DNA from: Adineta vaga
Lineage: Eukaryota; Animalia; Rotifera
NCBI GenBank assembly: GCA_021613535.1
Contig: CP075497.1
Location: 5,456,001 to 5,520,000 of the forward strand
Length of the DNA stretch: 64,000 bases
Direction of reading: 5' to 3'
In this document: positions 1 through 19,527 of the stretch, in pieces
How positions within the stretch are numbered: position 1 is the first letter of the stretch
Layout: the number at the start of each line of letters is the position of its first letter
Made by a program: the position numbers and the translations under genes
The notes under the pieces: generated by a model
Database searches by the model: none
What the model was told of the DNA's origin: nothing
Seen by the model: only the letters and a program-made list of their open reading frames with translations

Positions 1-2619
1 CCTTTGACTATTCCAAGATTATAATTTATATACGATTGTAAATCAATATGTAGATAATATTCAATTGCATCCAAGAAGAGTGGAATGAGAATATTAATAC
101 CACGTAAATTGATACGAAATAGATCACCACTATTCAATAAGATGGATTCTATAATAGTTTGAGAACGTTGCTAGAAGAAAAATATTCATTCGTTTTGAAA
201 TTTTCTAAATTTTATATTACTTCATCTCCATGATAAAATCGAAGTCCTTGCTGTAGAATATAATAGAATCGGCTTAAATATTCCGGATAAATAAATTCAT
301 CACATTGTGCATTACCAAAGATTGTACATATAGTCGCAAATGATTTGGCAAATGCTTCATCCATTAAACGTTCATTCTAAAATAGAATTGATAGAAAAAG
401 ATTCAATCGAAAAAAAAATATTCTCTTTTACTTGAACATCAATGACCTTTTCTGTTTCATTTGCTCGTGAAGCTAAATATAAATTGAATAAAGATTGATT
501 CAGAAAATAAATTGGCATACTTAAACCCGTCAGTAGTTTATTTCGTATAGCCATGTCGTATGTTGTCAATAGCTTTAATTACGCACAAAACATGTACACA
601 TAAACTACTCACTCAGCCGTATCAATCGAATGAGGCAAAAAAAGAAAAGTCGTATTCGAAATAGTTCGCTCAATTTATATCTGATCACATCACGAAGAGA
701 CGAATAGAGAGTCAATTATGTCCTATTGTTTTATTTACATAAGACTTTATCTACTTACTATCAAGGAGTGACGAACGTGAATGACGATCTTTTATTTGTA
801 AAAGACAACAATCTAATATCCATGAGCCATAGAGATGCATTAGACTATTGACAGTAGGATGATTGATATGTATGGTTTTCAAAGAAGGTTTTTCAGATCG
901 ATTCGTAGCAATCAATAATGGCGTCATTGGAGAAAGATTTTGATTAGTAGGTAAAGGAACTAAAGAAAAAAAAAATTCCAAGAAATATAATGATAGTATG
1001 TTCATTATCATACTTTTTCGATTATCAATTTGTGAACGAGTGGTTCGTAATGTTGGAGGTATAGAAGTCTGTTGATGTTGTTGAACACTCGATGGCACAC
1101 CACGAAGTGAATGAATTGATTGTCGTGGTGTTTGAATATTGTTAGGTGTTGATGGAGTATTTTCATTCATGATTGCTATGGAATTATTTGAAGGTTTTGG
1201 ACTATATAAACATGATGGATCGACATCTTTTCCTAAAGTAAGAATATGAAAAGAAACGATGAATCAGATCGTATGTCATTTTACCTAACCAAATATCAAC
1301 AAACATTCCTATTGCTTTTGTAACATTAACAAATATTCGTGGTAATTCTTGTAGAGATGTAAAATCTTTTAATTTGAAGTTTGCATTCATTTGTAATTGA
1401 CTAGAATATGTTGGCATTTGAAGAAAAACCTAAGAGAATCGAAAGTTTCAATTTATTTTCTTTTATTTTTGTTGAAAATTTTCTAATTACTGAAACATCA
1501 CCACATTCCGATGGATTTTGTAGAATCGTTAAAAATTGAATCCATGTTATTACAAGTTTGTCTAACGAAAGAGAATCGATAACTTTTTGCGTATATTCAC
1601 CTTGATCTGTCTCGGTACCTAAGAAAATTGGATTCGCAAAAACAGAATCTATATAAATTCGAATTTCGTACAAACATATTGCAATGGTATGAAATCTGAC
1701 CACCATAATTTATGTACAACTGTCGATGTAAGAACACACGTGAGCTGCGCCCAATCTATATATTACAATGAAATTTTCATAAAATATCGATGTTAAATCT
1801 AACCATAGACAACAGCTGGCCGATGACGCCAAGTTTGAGTATAATCACGAAACGTTCGCCATAATCCAGGTGGAATACGTATTTTATCAATTGCTGCCAT
1901 AAATACTTGATATATCGAAGGAACAAGACGATGACTCATAACAGCAGTACATTCTTCATTTGCTAGAAAATCGAACGAAGAAATAAGAAGGATTGAATCT
2001 TATTGCTATACTTCGATATGATGGAGATAAAACTGTATCACCAATTGCAAGAAAGACTTGTAATAAGATATGCCATAGATCTACACTTAATTCTGTTTGA
2101 CTAATCATAATTTGTAATTGACGTAAAACTTTGTGTGTATACATTCGTTTTGTTAATAAATCTGCTGTTTTTTCTAATAGATAAACGAAGTTTGAAATCA
2201 AATTTTACGAGATTCTATTTACCATCATGAATAACAAATAAATGATAAAGATGCCAAAACATTTGTGACCAATAGAATTCTGTTTTTTCACGTAGAATTG
2301 GTGGAATTGAATTTGAATTTGCCGATAGATTTTCAAATACTTTCAACCATTCAACATACACATTAGCACATAATTGATAAATAGAACTTTCTTCACATGT
2401 AAAACCAAAAGCAAAGATTTCTAATGTCCATTTAAAATCTTTATCCGTCGTTATAGAAAATGGACGATTACTTATAATTAATTCATAGATATGTGTTAAA
2501 TATGGTGCAGCTATTTTCTCTGCTACAATCGATGGTATATTACATGATAATGGTGAATTACAAATACTGTGTCGCTGAATTTCATCATCATATGATGAAT
2601 ATCCATTGTACATAAACAT
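1..2619 (-). CDS. RALGAPB: Ral GTPase-activating protein subunit beta, 5' portion (multi-exon; continues beyond window start)
   Basis: Exons translate to FKWTLEIFAFGF, LLQVFLAIGDTVLSP, IPPGLWRTFRDYTQTWRHRPAVV, HPTVNSLMHLYGSW and YPEYLSRFYIILQQGL...ESILLNSGDLF, in the order of conserved RALGAPB blocks. Short GT-AG introns. Confidence 0.85.
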
Positions 2620-2663
2620 CTAAAATAAGTGTTTGTTTTTATTTATTAAAAACTAAAAAAAAA

Positions 2664-3963
2664 TCATGAAACATCTGTATTTTTACTAAAGATAAAAATG
2701 TCTGTTTTAGTACGAATAACAAAACGTTCATTATCAGTGAATGGTATCATATTTCGTATTTCATTACAATCAAATACACGTACAGATCCAAGGCCATTCA
2801 TATTCACATCAAAACAACTGCCAGGATACGATCCTTGAACTAGCCAACCTTGATTTCTACTTGGACATATCCAATCACGTTCGATTCGATCATCAATCAT
2901 GACTTTATATAGATAACCATCTGCAAGAGATGTTGTTGAATACACTAATATATAATTTTTTTCATCATTCGCAATTACTAATAAAGCTAAATGTTCATTT
3001 GTATGATTATCAAGAGCTATTCGTCGAGAATTATATCCATCAGCAATGGGATATTGATCTGCTTGAAGATTTTCTAAGGAATCTTTATCATATTTATATA
3101 TAGTTGATTTTTTGACGAGATAGAATATACTACGATGATTATCGATTGCTCCACATATGTAACCAATACCAGACTCGATTAGATCATATTGTGTTGTTCG
3201 ATAGTCTAGTAAATAGACATTTTCATCTGTAATAACGATACATTTTAACAACCAATCCACATAACATAAATCATGAATCGTAGAATTATTATCCAATTGT
3301 GTAGAAGTTAGTTGTTTCGAATTGCTTAATGGAAGAATAACTAATTCATTTAAATTTTGAGAATAAACTAATGTATGATTTTCACAAAGAACCATGGACA
3401 TATCTTTTGTTGGAGATGATAAATGTGCTAATGTTTCTAATGTAAAATCTCGACCGAAATCAATAGAATTAATTGCAATTTTCTTTTGATTAGGTGATGA
3501 AGATTTCATTCGATTGATGGATACTTCAATTTTTTTATCTGTCTTTTCCGATGAATAACTATGATAATTATTCGATATATCATTTGATGTCGATGAATTG
3601 TTGGATTGATTTATTGGTGGTTGTTTTATTAGAGATTGTTTCGGACGAGGAGGACATTTAACAGATTGTCGTCTACCTAAAAATATTTAAAGAAATAACG
3701 ATAGAAAACTTTTGAAGAAGTATTTTACTTAAACTGTCATCAAAGGCATTTAAAATCAAATGACCAGCTGTACGTACACGTTCATCAAGTTGTTCTAATC
3801 GTTGTAAACGCCATTGATCAATATATGTTAAAGCATGTGTTCGTAATCTTACTGCTTGTGATCGATTTGAACAATGATCAATACAAAAAATAAATTCCTG
3901 AATATTTTCATCAAAATCATCTTCACTTCGATCATTAGTATTATAACGATCCGATAATTCCAT
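2664..3963 (-). CDS. Hypothetical protein: helical N-terminus plus probable beta-propeller (NHL/WD-like) C-terminal domain
   Basis: ORFs 3673-3981 and 2664-3509 are joined through an intron near 3676-3730. The C-terminal exon is rich in short beta-strand/Asp-Gly repeats. Fold is inferred only. Confidence 0.6.
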
Positions 3964-4519
3964 CGTATATATTCTTATCAACTAAAAGAATGATTCTGCT
4001 CGAAAAAGACTCATTTCATCCATTAGATTATTTAAATAACATGTTTAGTATAGAAATGAAAAATGGTACTCAATTACGTGAAAGAATGTTCTTTGTAAAG
4101 AAAAAAAAGAAAAAATTGGTTCCCTCGACAGATTCAAATGTATAAAATGATAAACATGTATGTATATATATAGAGACAGAAAGAGTTATTTTCTCTTTTT
4201 CTTTCTTATGTACATATAAAAAAATTAATTATCGAACACGTACACTGGCATACATAGGTTTTTTTCTCTGAAGAATTATTCACAATTATACATAAAGTTA
4301 ACTATACAATGGCACACACTACTGACAAAAAATGAGCATCTGTATTCTAAATAGGAAATAAAAAGAAGTGAAAAGTAATGGCAAAGTTGCGAGTTTTGTT
4401 TAATATATGAAATAAAAAAGATAAATAGGAAAAAGACGTTATGTTCAAGAAGAATAATATAGAAAAAATAAAAGTTTATAGAATATATATATATATATAT
4501 AAAGGTTCTGTACTGAGCA

Positions 4520-7500
4520 TTATTTACGTTCACTGGCTGGTTCATTCATTGTTTTATCGCATATTGTACATACACGTACAGGTGTTAACCAATCTCGTTC
4601 TGGTACTGAACGTTTATTTGGTGAACATTGTTCACAAATACCCTCGCCACAATTTCGACTAGAACAAAAACAAAAGATGTTAATATGTAAATGAGATATA
4701 AAACATACCAATGATGTAATCGATTGGTTGTACTATTAAATGAACGTTTACAAATATTACAAGCACGACATTCATTATCTGGTCGCCAATAATTTGGTCG
4801 AGTACTTTCTTTTATCAGTTCTATATGAAAAACAAACAGAAAAGATTATTCTAAAGAAGAACAGAACATATTTCAAATGTTTACCAATAGGATAATTAGC
4901 ACCTATCTTTTCGAGACCATTTATTACAGTTTCATAAACACGTCTAGTTGTAGGAATATCAACTGTAACTGGACCTTTGAAAATAGAAAAGAAAATGAAT
5001 AGATATTTTTAAAAGAAAAGACAAAATCAATCGGTTTTTTTGTCAAAAGATGGAACAGCATGCACACAGGAGCATCAACATCAAACGAGACGAACTGATA
5101 CGTGAAATAAACGAATAAACGTACGAGAAAATGACCTTTTAGCATACCTGCTCCTGGCTGTTCGATATCGAAAATATCAGTTGGAGTTAAACACAGATCG
5201 CTGAGATGCTCACCGGATGAGACAATACTTGCTGAATCTGCATTGTTACCATTTTCATAACTATTGACTTTTGGTCTTTGATTGTTTTGTTTATCTTTTT
5301 CTATCAAAGATGATGAAGAATTTGACGTAGATGACGGTGGACGAGATTGTGGATTGCCATAACAATGATTACATACACGAACAGGTTTTTCAGTATCAAT
5401 CCATGGAACAATACGACGATTGCTTGTACATGTGTCACAAAATACATGGCCACAAGCTAAATAATAATAAATGTCGTTTATTTATGCGAAGGTTTTATTA
5501 TTCTCAATTCTTCTCATGAGCATCTTGTAAAACAAACCTCGACAATGATGTTTGGAATAATCAGAACCAAATTGTAAATCACATGATGAACATTTCTATT
5601 AAGTTTAAAAAACAAAATTTTTTTCAATGATTACGAATAAAACAAGTATCGTTCTTACATGAACATCTTTATTTGGAACCCAGTAAGATGGTGCTACTTG
5701 ATCAGCAACCATTTCTGTTAACATCTTTGTTGGAGCCGAAAGATAACTAAACGAATATAAAATTTTACGTTGACATTTTTCTTTAAAAAAGAAAGAATCA
5801 TTTAATCCGACCTTCCAGCATAGACAATCAATTCAATAAATTTTCTAGGTGTTACATCACTTGCTAATCGACTAGCATCATCTCCTGGCCAAACATGAAT
5901 AACTTCTACACGGGTAACATCTTTTGGTTCATTGTTTCCATACCAATGCTTTCTTGAACGATAGATTTCTCCATGAGATGGACATTCAATTACAAATCCA
6001 GACCACATATATTTCAAAAGTCCCTGTACAAGACTATCACCTTTCGGTATAAGTTTTCCATACACAATCATATCACGTCCTTCACGATGACATCTTAAAC
6101 ACTTCCAAACTTCATTATCGAGATCTTTACTATATGAACATCGTTTATCACATTGATGAGGAATATTTTCTTTGTGATGATTTGCGGTCATTATACATTT
6201 AGATCTTAGAAAATGAAAATCAAATACAAGAGAATTTGTGAAAATCGACTAGTCTTACCCGCATGACAAACATTTTTCACAACATGCAAAAAAATCATCT
6301 GGCAAAGTGGAAGGCATTTCTGGTGGAATTGCATGGTTAAATTTTTCATTCAAAGCCTAAATAGATATGACAAAGAGCGTAGTGTATTGAATTTATTTTT
6401 CTGATCATTAATTATTTGAAAAAGGAATCTTATTATCAATAGTATACTTACCCGTAAGGCTGTATATACTGCTGACAAACGTCGTGGAGAACGAATCTTG
6501 TTATTTTCCAAAATGGCTGTGATTGTCGCTTTCAGTTCACTAAAATCTGTCTGTTTTCCACCCAACGTTTGAATTCCAACATATTCAATCGAACTATAAC
6601 AAGCACTCTCATGCACATTACACAATAGAACACAACGATAATAACACCTACCTATATGCATCATACGACAGTTTCATCTTCTCGAATCGTTCTTTCACTT
6701 GTTCAACCGCTGTCTTTTGACATTGAAAGTGGTCTACATCATACATTTCATCGTCATCTCTTTTTTCATACTCTCCACCAAAACAACATACCTCTCAACA
6801 CTTCCGTGTGTTGTGTTTCATGGAACACAATCAATGTTGGTCCCATCGTCGAAATCGGTCCATCCACCTTGCATGTTCTCATCACGTTTTCGAGTTCTTT
6901 TCGAAAATATTTCAAGAATGCATTGGATGCATCGGAGAGAAATTGGAACATGTCATTGGGTAGTTTAGGTGCTCGTGTTCGAAAGATGAGAATATCACTG
7001 ATGCAAAGAATTTTGAGAAGGAGTCGATTTCGAATGTTATCATTTTGTGATAATCCGAGTCGACCTTCGGTATCGAGAACGAGTGTTCGATGATTTTCAT
7101 CGAGTGCTGACCAAACACCCATGGTGCATGAATCGGAAGTTGACGAAGTGTTAAATTTTTCTTGACCATTGAAGAAGACTTGATTTAGTGTGAATGATTT
7201 TCCATCACCTGTGTTGCCAATGATAGAGACACATTTGACTGGAAGATCTTTCGATGTGGCTCTGAGCTGTCGAGTGAATTCATCTTCATTGTTGATCTAA
7301 TTAGAACACATAAGAAAAAAAGACTTTTGAAATTGAAAAAGAAGTTATTGCAAAGAAAGCTGATGAGTTACCGTGAGACGTTCATTTGCATCAAGAAGTA
7401 AGAAAACACCATTATGATCGGTATTTAATTGTGATTTCTGAGAAAGACGATGGTTGCTTTTAGTAATATATCGATTATCAATTTGATCTTCATCTCCATG

Positions 7501-17321: not shown

Positions 17322-18312
17322 ATGGCGAATACAAATACACAGGTTGGTTCTTCGATAAGAACATTTAATTTTTTACTTAAGTTCCATCGTATAGTTTCGT
17401 TTAACAAAGGAAGAAAGTGCTCTCATGGACGAATGTCGAAAATCGAGTTTCTGGTATCGATGTAAGTAGTTCAATATGGATTTGAAAGATATACTTATTT
17501 CTTCTATTCTATAGCGGTGCCATTAATGGCAATTACATCAGGTATCATGACATATCTTCGTATTAATAGTAAGTATTGTCATCGTTTTGCTTTAGAGAAA
17601 AGCGAACTACTTTGGTGATTTATTTAGATCGTATACCACCAAAATTCTATGGAATAAAGTTAGCTAGTACAATCCTAGGAGGTAAATTAATGCACTCTTG
17701 AAATGCAGAGCATATATTATGAGAATATTTTGTTGTAGCTTATATTGTGGGCAAAGTATCATATATATCTGAATGTCGACGATTGATAGTTGAGCGATTA
17801 CCTAATTCAAATCTTGCTCATGCATTAGAATCCAAACCATACGATCTTATATCTGATATGTATGAACATTTTCTTCGATATATCTCTGAATTATATTAGG
17901 TTTTCTTAGGGCACAACCACCTGAAATTGTTTCCAAAACTACCACCACGAATATATTCGGTGTTCGCAATCAAGAAGAAGAAGAAGAAGAACAGCAACAT
18001 GATGATTTGATACCTGCAGATAAAAATAACGTTCGAAGATATGTTACATATGATGAATTACGTCAAAGAAATCGTGCTGAACATGCATCAAAATTTCCAG
18101 GAGTTAAGCCTCGAAATGGTTTGTTTCTAAATGTTTTTCTTCATCATCTTTCGAATTTTATTTTAGATACACCTACACCGATTGAAGACAGCAAACAACT
18201 TCCACCCTCACCAATCGTATCCAATGACCTCGCTCCTCGTCCAATTACTAGTAGTCTTTCTAAGAAATCAAATATTCGAAAGAATCAATATGGTGATGAA
18301 GTCTACGATTAA
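17322..18312 (+). CDS. OCIAD1: OCIA domain-containing protein (asrij/OCIAD1-like)
   Basis: LTKEESALMDECRKSSFWYR, AYIVGKVSYISEC...RLPNS, TYDELRQRNR and C-terminal KNQYGD. Confidence 0.85.
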
Positions 18313-18433
18313 TCTTGTAGACGATAGTATTTTTCTTTTTTCATAAAATAAAAGTGACTCCTTTTGTATACTCATAAATATAAATAGAATTACCGATGAT
18401 TTTATTATTTACCATACTGAACGAAATCTTTCT

Positions 18434-19527
18434 CTAATTCGAAGATGAAAATGTTCTTATTGATTGTGTCACATTTGTTTCGGAACTTTTCTCTGAAAAG
18501 ATATCGTCATGTGATGTACTACTTAATCTATGTAAATGTCGTTTCTTTCGTCGTTGATGTCGATGTTTTGAGGGCATTTTCTGTCTATCAAAAACATCCG
18601 TTTTCGTTCGTGCAATATGTCGAATAACTGGTAAACGATTTTTATTATTATCGATTTTCACTTCTGCTTTAGCATGAAGCACTCTTGAATTTTGTTGTTG
18701 ATTATTGATATCTTCATGATTAATCGTCGCTGCTATCGTACCAAATTGAGATTGAATGGCAAACTTGTCAATCGGTTGACTAAACTTTTTGGAAACGGTT
18801 GATTGAAGTAATTTATGAAGTAGTTCAGACGAAAGATGAACTTTAAGTTTAGGAATAGTTGATTTGTTTTGTTGCTTTACAAGAGATTTAATGAAACGAC
18901 GTGGTAATCGAATGATCAATGTCGTTTGAGAAGAGATTTCTCGAGGATAAAGCTCATGTTCATTACATTGAATGTTTTTATTATGAATAAGACTACGTAG
19001 AAAGAATAGTGATGAAATCAAGAACTAGATAAAATTGCTAATTTACACTTTTTGTTGATGTTGATTGACATCCGAACTGAGAAATTGTTTGTTAAACAAA
19101 ATCTTCTCATTCATAACATCATTTACATAATAATTTTGATTTTGTGCAGAATTTTTCTTCTGTTTTCCATATTTCAAGACTGATCGATCGAATGGAATAG
19201 AAGAATTACTGAACTGTGAAAATTTTTCCATTCCATATTCAGTTTTTTTTCTTAAGTATCACTCACTTTTTTCTTCGAAGAGTTTGGTACAGAACTCGTT
19301 CGATGTTTATGATCAAGACTATTCGATACAGTAGAACTGTGACTAATATCTTCATTTGAAGATGTTTTTCTTGTTTGTGAACTCAAAGAACTCATTTGCA
19401 TGAGATGTACTTTGGATCGATAATAGGCACATTCATTTGATTTCAGTTCAATAAATTTCTCTAAGAATATCAATCGATTGAGTAAATCTTTAGTTTTATT
19501 TGATGGAAAAGGAGAATTTGTTGTCAT
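18434..19527 (-). CDS. Hypothetical basic, Ser-rich protein (multi-exon)
   Basis: Three consecutive minus-strand ORFs (19252-19527, 19043-19231, 18434-19021) separated by intron-sized gaps. No family recognised. Confidence 0.55.

Follow-up and report, generated by a model that had tools for sequence, protein, structure and literature searches.

Operons that are resolved by spliced-leader (SL) trans-splicing are known from nematodes, tunicates, flatworms and chaetognaths, and rotifers have been known since 2005 to use SL trans-splicing. In bdelloids, work by Pouchkina-Stantcheva and Tunnacliffe from 2005 reportedly described trans-splicing of individual mRNAs and not of operons, and SL1-type operons of C. 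elegans were reportedly described by Williams et al. in 1999. SL-resolved operons without intercistronic DNA occur in Ciona intestinalis (Satou et al. 2006, PMC1488885). The same publication cites the SL1-type operons of C. elegans (its refs 42 and 43) and gives intercistronic regions of ~100 nt together with a dedicated SL2 for the SL2-type operons of this nematode, and of 23–30 nt for operons of Oikopleura. Operons are unreported in rotifers (PMC7986045), and a published rotifer or bdelloid operon was not found in the searchable literature.

We analyzed a junction of two genes on the minus strand of a 64-kb window of the Adineta vaga genome (the window being the whole stretch of DNA that was analyzed). 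An upstream gene, here called gene U, ends directly in front of RALGAPB, and an earlier note had proposed a polycistronic transcript that is processed by SL trans-splicing. In our analysis gene U and RALGAPB probably constitute an operon of two cistrons that is resolved by the SL and has hardly any DNA between the cistrons. The locus resembles the Ciona operons in its same-strand, functionally unrelated genes, in a single SL for monocistronic and operon genes and in its expected output, which would be either the upstream or the downstream mRNA in a mutually exclusive manner. In contrast to Ciona, about 5–10 nt are left here between contig 3′ ends and the acceptor AG. A canonical AATAAA is present and conserved (12/13 lineages) but is missing from most operons of Ciona, for which dicistronic cDNA and SL-ESTs have been obtained; neither of these was seen here. 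With the SL1-type operons of C. elegans the locus shares little or no intercistronic sequence, a canonical AATAAA upstream and the use of a general rather than an operon-specific SL, although the phylum is a different one and the SL is unrelated. The SL2-type operons and those of Oikopleura are alike in that a polycistronic RNA is resolved by 3′-end formation coupled to SL trans-splicing; however, only about 5–10 nt would separate poly(A) site and acceptor here, no second SL class is evident, and neither the ~100-nt spacer nor the dedicated downstream SL of the SL2 type is found at the U–RALGAPB junction. The comparison with nematode operons that had been drawn before is imprecise, as the junction fits the SL1 type and the operons of Ciona but not the SL2 type. 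Relative to the known trans-splicing in bdelloids, the same 23-nt SL family and an acceptor near the start codon are found, but individual mRNAs were reportedly described there whereas an operon is proposed here.

Layout of the junction and identity of the genes

The features of the locus are summarized in Table 1. Exactly 44 nt (2663–2620) lie between the gene U stop and the RALGAPB ATG on the same strand, well within the distance of <~100 nt applied to same-strand neighbors. The 44-nt gap, the poly(A) signal and the acceptor at the ATG had all been claimed in the earlier note, and each element was indeed read at its minus-strand coordinates. The putative cleavage zone of gene U would be located 7–12 nt past the second AATAAA. 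An ORF-based scan yielded no second junction with a short gap, AATAAA and AG|ATG elsewhere in the 64-kb window. Genome-wide, the pattern AATAAA-N(5-25)-TTTTAGATG gave 165 matches compared with 114 for the control (1.45x). As this difference is too weak and the layout is not pervasive, we rejected the exact junction layout as a common feature of the genome.

Table 1. Features of the U–RALGAPB locus, listed in the direction of transcription (positions in the 64-kb window)
Feature	Position	Strand	Basis
Stop codon of the upstream FYVE/ZFYVE1-like gene	4520..4522	-	ORF; PF01363 FYVE in orthologous neighbors
FYVE-gene 3′ UTR and region upstream of gene U, candidate shared promoter region	4024..4519	-	homology to homoeolog spacer
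Gene U 5′ leader, colinear with genome	3964..4050	-	X1 contig up to 4050, no loose letters
Gene U exon 1, annotated ATG 3963-3961	3729..3963	-	RNA contigs, protein match, orthologue alignment
Gene U exon 2 including stop	2664..3676	-	ORF; 100% identical to P0001 (A. vaga I4U23_028977)
Gene U stop TGA	2666-2664	-	sequence read
T-run between gene U stop and AATAAA pair		-	sequence read
Twin overlapping AATAAA, gene U poly(A) signals	2647-2642 and 2643-2638 (span 2638..2647)	-	sequence
Gene U mRNA 3′ ends, putative cleavage/poly(A) zone	2626..2631	-	contig ends X5 and X11
Polypyrimidine tract and YAG acceptor, proposed SL trans-splice site	2620..2628; YAG 2622-2620, AG 2621-2620	-	
RALGAPB ATG	2619-2617	-	directly adjoins YAG
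RALGAPB exon 1, 132 codons	2223..2619	-	ORF; RNA contigs; PDB 9qwp_B alignment

RNA data were available as contigs from four runs (X1, X2, X5 and X11), which count as RNA-like because GT..AG introns are skipped in them. Gene U is a real, spliced and expressed gene whose 52-nt intron (3728–3677) is skipped in the runs X1, X2 and X11; its counterpart is the A. vaga hypothetical protein I4U23_028977. Since the X1 contig is colinear with the genome up to 4050, gene U has a conventional 5′ leader of its own. Comparison of the leader translation with the N-termini of orthologues places an ancestral start in this leader (ATG 4023–4021); in A. vaga this start is closed off by a TAG in the same frame (3984–3982). 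The product of gene U is a bdelloid-only coiled-coil/beta-propeller protein. No Pfam family was matched with the exons searched one at a time. The AlphaFold model reaches a mean pLDDT of no more than 56, and a fold search returns generic beta-propellers only. The downstream gene is identified as RALGAPB by homology to the N-terminal domain and to a solved protein: exon 1 aligns to residues 90–162 of the Ral GTPase-activating protein subunit beta (PDB 9qwp_B, E=4e-6) and exon 2 matches PF20412 (E=2.9e-5, just under the curated cut-off), a family that is also found on orthologous full gene calls.

RNA contigs on both sides of the acceptor

The gene U contigs end at 2626 (X5), 2631 (X11), 2649 (X2) and 2672 (X1). 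The first two ends are about 5–10 nt away from the AG at 2621–2620; they are given by contigs and not by reads anchored in a poly(A) tail. On the other side, RALGAPB contigs of three runs cover 2223–2617, 2223–2618 and 2223–2621 and then jump an intron. The mRNA ends of gene U and RALGAPB abut at the AG. In X1 and X2 the RALGAPB contigs start at 2617 and 2618 without extra letters. The X11 contig starts at 2621, and 5 letters past this position, known only as unaligned letters, do not fit the genome. For an SL with the end ...GAG, the match to the genomic ...TTTTAG would be lost at exactly this point. A RALGAPB start site within the 44-nt spacer, with a 5′ UTR that is unspliced and very short and with an incidental YAG, is very unlikely in our view. 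The X1 and X2 ends fit a nearby start and an SL junction alike, but the X11 contig ceases to match the genome immediately upstream of the AG. Furthermore, the polypyrimidine-YAG at the ATG is invariant in the 14 sequences compared below whereas the remaining spacer varies in length, and the shortest gap found is no longer than 17 nt.

The SL itself is present in this genome. The rotifer SL exon with a GT donor behind it occurs at least 58 times, one of these genes was read through, and the SL sequence is identical to that reported for rotifers (PMC3795323), so that the trans-splicing background presumed in the earlier note could be confirmed. Only one SL family with minor sequence variants was found in the genome. 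An exact pattern composed of the final 7 nt of the SL and the conserved first RALGAPB codons gave 0 matches in metagenome contigs. When a 258-aa ORF from the N-terminal part of RALGAPB (L017) was used for a word search, 25 fragments were returned, none of which opens with SL-encoded residues; the sizes of these contigs look genomic. A JGI contig with a 467-aa gene U (P0012) was considered as an mRNA reaching RALGAPB and rejected, as its ORF reads in frame through the intron and the contig is hence genomic.

The same contigs bear on whether U and RALGAPB are a single gene, fused by a cis intron (for example from GT 2672–2671 to AG 2621–2620) or connected by a RALGAPB 5′ exon that is cis-spliced from within U. 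The frames are compatible in A. vaga, the gene U contig of X1 ends at 2672, and the automatic annotation of A. ricciae (P0013) continues from gene U into RALGAPB exon 1. Nevertheless, gene U contigs continue unspliced to 2649, 2631 and 2626, and the GTs at 2672–2671 and 2653–2652 are present but used by no contig, which makes the previous statement that there is no usable donor essentially right. A cis-spliced 5′ exon, named beforehand as an observation that would speak against trans-splicing, is absent from the three RALGAPB contigs that reach the ATG, and among the joints listed, which are all but two, none leads into 2620. In addition, the GT at 2672–2671 is not conserved whereas the gene U stop and the AATAAA are, and the N-termini of RALGAPB and of the solved RalGAP beta chain lie close together in the alignment. 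We regard a fusion as extremely unlikely. The chance of a stable bicistronic mRNA, from which RALGAPB would be translated by reinitiation or leaky scanning, appears almost negligible: the very short gap and the common strand would suit it, but the contigs stop on either side of 2626–2621 with none crossing in the four runs, and gene U, with 415 aa, has many AUGs. Both possibilities were rejected on the basis of RNA contigs and conservation.

A dicistronic contig across 2626–2621 is absent from the four runs, which is weak evidence as contigs drop rare precursors; in X11 one contig does span the FYVE gene and gene U. This absence would also be compatible with two independent units. In such an arrangement, RALGAPB would have a promoter inside the gene U body, an outron overlapping the 3′ part of U and SL trans-splicing at AG 2621–2620, while U would terminate after its poly(A) site. 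The contig depths of the genes differ (52 for gene U versus 13 for RALGAPB in X11; 10.8 for gene U in X5, where RALGAPB is represented merely by a single 22-nt piece), although such depths are a poor measure of expression. Many SL-trans-spliced genes are monocistronic in other phyla as well (PMC1488885). Even so, we consider an internal promoter rather unlikely. Formation of the gene U 3′ end already demands transcription past the acceptor, and the promoter would need to lie in a protein-coding sequence with strong conservation across 13 lineages. A further argument comes from the homoeolog described below.

Conservation in bdelloids and a homoeolog without gene U

We distinguished 13 bdelloid lineages by pairwise identities of ≤90% over the last 300 nt of gene U. 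The gap between the gene U stop and the RALGAPB ATG measures 17–59 nt in all of them, the lowest value being that of a single lineage. YAG|ATG does not vary among the 14 sequences, which are those of the 13 lineages and of the U-less homoeolog. In 12 of the 13 lineages an AATAAA is found at or after the gene U stop and ends 11–44 nt before the ATG, so cleavage must fall at or past the acceptor in several lineages. Judged from sequence comparison, the junction layout exceeds chance, given that it is unique in the 64-kb window and recurs in 13 bdelloid lineages. The adjacency of the FYVE gene and gene U is likewise conserved with a distance of about 460–550 nt; therefore conservation of gene order alone is not specific for an operon. 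As a side observation, a branch-site-like YTAAT overlaps the AATAAA in A. vaga. As judged by eye, roughly half of the lineages show this overlap; because it is not found throughout, any role would be speculation.

A. vaga carries a homoeolog (C3) of the U-bearing copy (C6) from which gene U is wholly absent. There, the same polypyrimidine-AG|ATG of RALGAPB is located 485 nt past the FYVE stop, with the acceptor at L009:1499–1500. In semi-global alignments the C3 spacer (L009:1016–1478) scored z=6.9 against the FYVE-to-U region of C6 but z=0.0 against the gene U body, and its homology to C6 runs down to about 4024 and resumes from 2644. RALGAPB of C3 is colinear with that of C6 and its exon frames are open; the first exons are 80% identical with a dN/dS of 0.22. 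Since RALGAPB is intact on C3 behind a homologous spacer, the same upstream region would serve U on C6 and RALGAPB on C3. In the homoeolog, the same AG|ATG is preceded by DNA that matches the U-upstream region, which makes this region a candidate shared promoter, and the comparison suggests a promoter position upstream of gene U. A promoter inside gene U is difficult to reconcile with this copy, which keeps RALGAPB with open frames, the dN/dS of 0.22 and the same acceptor behind U-upstream-like DNA although the U body is missing. A homoeolog pair with and without gene U is a rare natural test of the position of an operon promoter.

Proposed processing and significance

According to the operon reading, RNA polymerase II would initiate upstream of gene U, at or beyond 4050, and continue through U into RALGAPB. 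As the contig ends indicate, the gene U mRNA would be cut and polyadenylated around 2631–2626, past the twin AATAAA, and the 5′ end of the RALGAPB mRNA would be created at the YAG (2622–2620) adjoining the ATG. The rotifer SL of 22–23 nt, trans-spliced at this acceptor, would then represent the entire 5′ UTR. If poly(A) site and AG are separated by no more than 5–10 nt, as presumed, trans-splicing must use a branch point within the 3′ UTR of gene U, and the U/GU-rich element for the gene U poly(A) site would have to lie in the first RALGAPB codons. Each precursor probably gives either gene U mRNA or RALGAPB mRNA, but not both, as has been proposed for the operons of Ciona and the SL1-type operons of C. 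elegans. The polycistronic, SL-processed transcript of the earlier note is in part borne out: the rotifer SL, the abutting mRNA ends, the cis 5′ exon not being seen, the conservation in 13 lineages and the U-less homoeolog speak in its favor, whereas no dicistronic contig occurs in the four runs and a promoter inside U is still the main rival.

More tentatively, and with somewhat less confidence than doubt, bdelloids could possess conserved SL-resolved operons without intercistronic DNA. At this locus, poly(A) and trans-splice signals would be packed into 17–59 nt, competition between cleavage/polyadenylation and trans-splicing would set the ratio of U to RALGAPB, and the homoeolog would have lost a cistron while promoter and acceptor were kept. 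If this is true, the homoeolog is a natural ‘cistron deletion’ experiment. The annotation of bdelloid genomes is also affected, as the automatic call in A. ricciae already runs U into RALGAPB. With a conserved junction of the U–RALGAPB type, rotifers would join the few phyla in which SL-resolved operons are known, and this bears on the question whether operons arise wherever SL trans-splicing evolves.

The junction between gene U and RALGAPB

The earlier note had described a poly(A) signal and a splice acceptor packed into the 44 nt between a stop codon and an ATG, and a second reading of the sequence found this description accurate. On the minus strand the long open reading frame of gene U, a two-exon gene immediately upstream of RALGAPB, ends in a TGA, after which come a T-run, two overlapping AATAAA hexamers and a short polypyrimidine stretch terminating in an AG that directly precedes the RALGAPB ATG; stop and start are exactly 44 nt apart. 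GC content is ~30% across the whole window. An ORF-based scan of the 64 kb yielded no other junction of exactly the same kind, and genome-wide the narrow motif AATAAA-N(5-25)-TTTTAGATG reached only 1.45 times its control. A weaker operon-like junction is found on the plus strand: an AATAAA-containing stretch follows the stop of a 140-aa open frame and, 132 nt on, an AG adjoins the ATG of a 60-aa ORF.

Features of the junction region and contig ends (window coordinates)
Feature	Position	Strand	Remark
FYVE gene, alternative joints	4972-5212	minus	one shared site
FYVE gene stop	4522-4520	minus	
FYVE contig 3′ ends	4259, 4218, 4182	minus	runs other than X11
U contig 5′ ends	4050, 4172	minus	runs other than X11
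Ancestral U ATG	4023-4021	minus	
In-frame TAG	3984-3982	minus	
U exon 1	3963-3729	minus	annotated start 3963
U exon 2	3676-2664	minus	
U stop (TGA)	2666-2664	minus	
AATAAA (two, overlapping)	2647-2642, 2643-2638	minus	
U contig 3′ ends	2626, 2631, 2649, 2672	minus	X5, X11, X2, X1
Acceptor AG	2621-2620	minus	
RALGAPB ATG	2619-2617	minus	
RALGAPB contig starts	2617, 2618, 2621	minus	X1, X2, X11
Weaker junction	18312-18447	plus	stop at 18312

Exon 2 of RALGAPB matches PF20412, which is also present on orthologous full-length gene calls. Exon 1 aligns with 9qwp_B, a solved Ral GTPase-activating protein beta subunit (query 55-129, chain 90-162), which places the ATG near the native N-terminus. The best protein match of U is the A. 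vaga hypothetical protein I4U23_028977 (415 aa), which is U itself; a Pfam profile search assigned it no family. All 25 relatives come from the bdelloids Adineta and Rotaria or from assemblies and metagenomes, and mean identity is 64% among the 13 that were aligned. In a low-confidence model (pLDDT 56), U appears to consist of a helical hairpin at the N-terminus, a disordered linker and a beta-propeller-like domain at the C-terminus. In other bdelloids the U reading frame is ~19 codons longer at its 5′ end (MDKMN...HLST..ME); the ancestral ATG persists in A. vaga but is shut by an in-frame TAG, which therefore leaves a 13-codon upstream ORF before the annotated start.

The junction is deeply conserved. 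U homologues were traced to their own contigs and to metagenome loci, giving 13 distinct lineages (pairwise ≤90% identity over the 3′-terminal 300 nt of U): A. vaga, A. steineri, A. ricciae, Rotaria sp. Silwood2, R. sordida, two Logan assemblies, two ENA contigs and four JGI contigs. RALGAPB directly follows U in every one, with a stop-to-ATG gap of 17-59 nt and an invariant YAG adjoining ATGTTYATGTA; AATAAA occurs in 12 of the 13, ending 11-44 nt ahead of the ATG. Judged by these spacings, normal cleavage 10-25 nt past AATAAA would in several lineages land at or beyond the acceptor. Unlike this short gap, the distance from the upstream FYVE/ZFYVE1-like gene (FYVE gene) to U is ~460-550 nt in the same loci. 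A deposited A. ricciae gene call (GCA_905250095.1; 481 aa, partial) extends from U into RALGAPB exon 1; the short distance between the genes is the probable cause of this annotation fusion.

RNA contigs across the locus

Logan contigs of four runs (X1, X2, X5 and X11) from three studies were compared with window positions 1-5600. All four runs are RNA, since their contigs skip GT..AG introns. The ends of U and RALGAPB contigs abut, and none of the contigs listed for the four runs spans 2626-2621. A cis 5′ exon is absent from all three RALGAPB contigs, and the joints listed for the four runs include none into 2620; two joints fall outside this list, one of which must be RALGAPB intron 1, as contigs continue past 2223. 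These contigs contradict a cis fusion of U and RALGAPB, which we regard as extremely improbable, as well as a stable bicistronic mRNA, the least probable explanation of all. The X11 RALGAPB contig carries 5 further letters past 2621 that mismatch the genome. A spliced leader (SL) ending in ...GAG would fit the genomic AG and then diverge, and this candidate overhang is exactly such a pattern. Transcription starting in the 44-nt spacer without trans-splicing fits poorly with these non-genomic letters and with the invariant YAG, and is very unlikely.

A promoter of RALGAPB inside U would agree with the lack of dicistronic RNA among the contigs of the four runs and with the differing contig depths of the two genes, although depths are poor expression measures (52 for U and 13 for RALGAPB in X11; 10.8 for U in X5, where RALGAPB is represented by one 22-nt piece only). 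The 5′ leader of U is an ordinary one, as its X1 contig is colinear with the genome as far as 4050. Further upstream, a single X11 contig (2631-4658, minus strand) runs from the FYVE gene across its stop and a 557-nt spacer to the U 3′ end; FYVE, U and RALGAPB could form a three-gene operon, or UTRs may overlap. Two joints from one site in the FYVE gene, skipping 173 nt (X11 only) or 239 nt (all four runs), suggest alternative splicing.

A homoeolog that lacks U

A second RALGAPB copy (80% identity in exon 1) lies on another A. vaga contig, C3, whereas no second U copy was found in the genome. On C3, tttttcAG|ATG of RALGAPB comes 485 nt after the FYVE stop. The spacer aligns to the sequence that separates the FYVE stop from U on C6, the contig of the window (z=6.9 vs shuffles), and not to the U body (z=0.0). 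The similarity reaches approximately 4024, just ahead of the ancestral U start, with a weak tail that makes this left boundary approximate, and picks up again at 2644, ~22 nt ahead of the acceptor. Colinearity of the C3 RALGAPB copy with C6 extends over >6 kb, its exon frames are open, and exon-1 dN/dS is 0.22. A functional-looking RALGAPB therefore stands directly behind DNA homologous to the U-upstream region. This arrangement would be expected of an operon whose promoter lies upstream of U, whether the first cistron has been lost or not yet acquired. A RALGAPB promoter inside U, which we consider possible but doubtful, is difficult to square with it. Downstream of RALGAPB, ~3.9 kb on C6 (within C6:5446001-5456000) are absent from C3, with colinearity resuming beyond.

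Spliced leaders and processing of a proposed operon

The A. vaga assembly (100.8 Mb, 6 contigs; the window is C6:5456001-5520000) contains at least 58 copies of the rotifer SL exon with a GT donor. The sequence is the published 23-nt rotifer SL (PMC3795323), apart from the preceding genomic base, and one gene pair read directly is arranged head-to-head. Many SL RNA genes are paired in this way, with SL exons ~156 nt apart (copies on C1, C2, C4, C5 and C6). Clusters lie on C5 at ~9.88-9.93 Mb and 10.91-10.93 Mb, and several copies bear single-base variants, e.g. C-to-A at SL position 10.

We consider it moderately likely that U and RALGAPB form a two-cistron operon resolved by the SL. In the literature searched, no rotifer operon is described; a paper of 2025 does name rotifers, loosely and with no data, in a list of lineages with ‘trans-splicing and operonic transcription’ (PMC12460157). 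In the proposed U-RALGAPB operon, transcription of both genes would begin at 4050 or further upstream, and the SL would be added at the acceptor AG. The U/GU-rich AUGUUUAUGUA of RALGAPB would sit at the expected place of the downstream poly(A) element and, given a spacing of 5-10 nt between poly(A) site and AG, the trans-splicing branch point would fall inside the U 3′ UTR. Because of this geometry, processing of the U and RALGAPB mRNAs would be mutually exclusive, the same argument from poly(A) site and acceptor that has been made for Ciona operons (PMC1488885).
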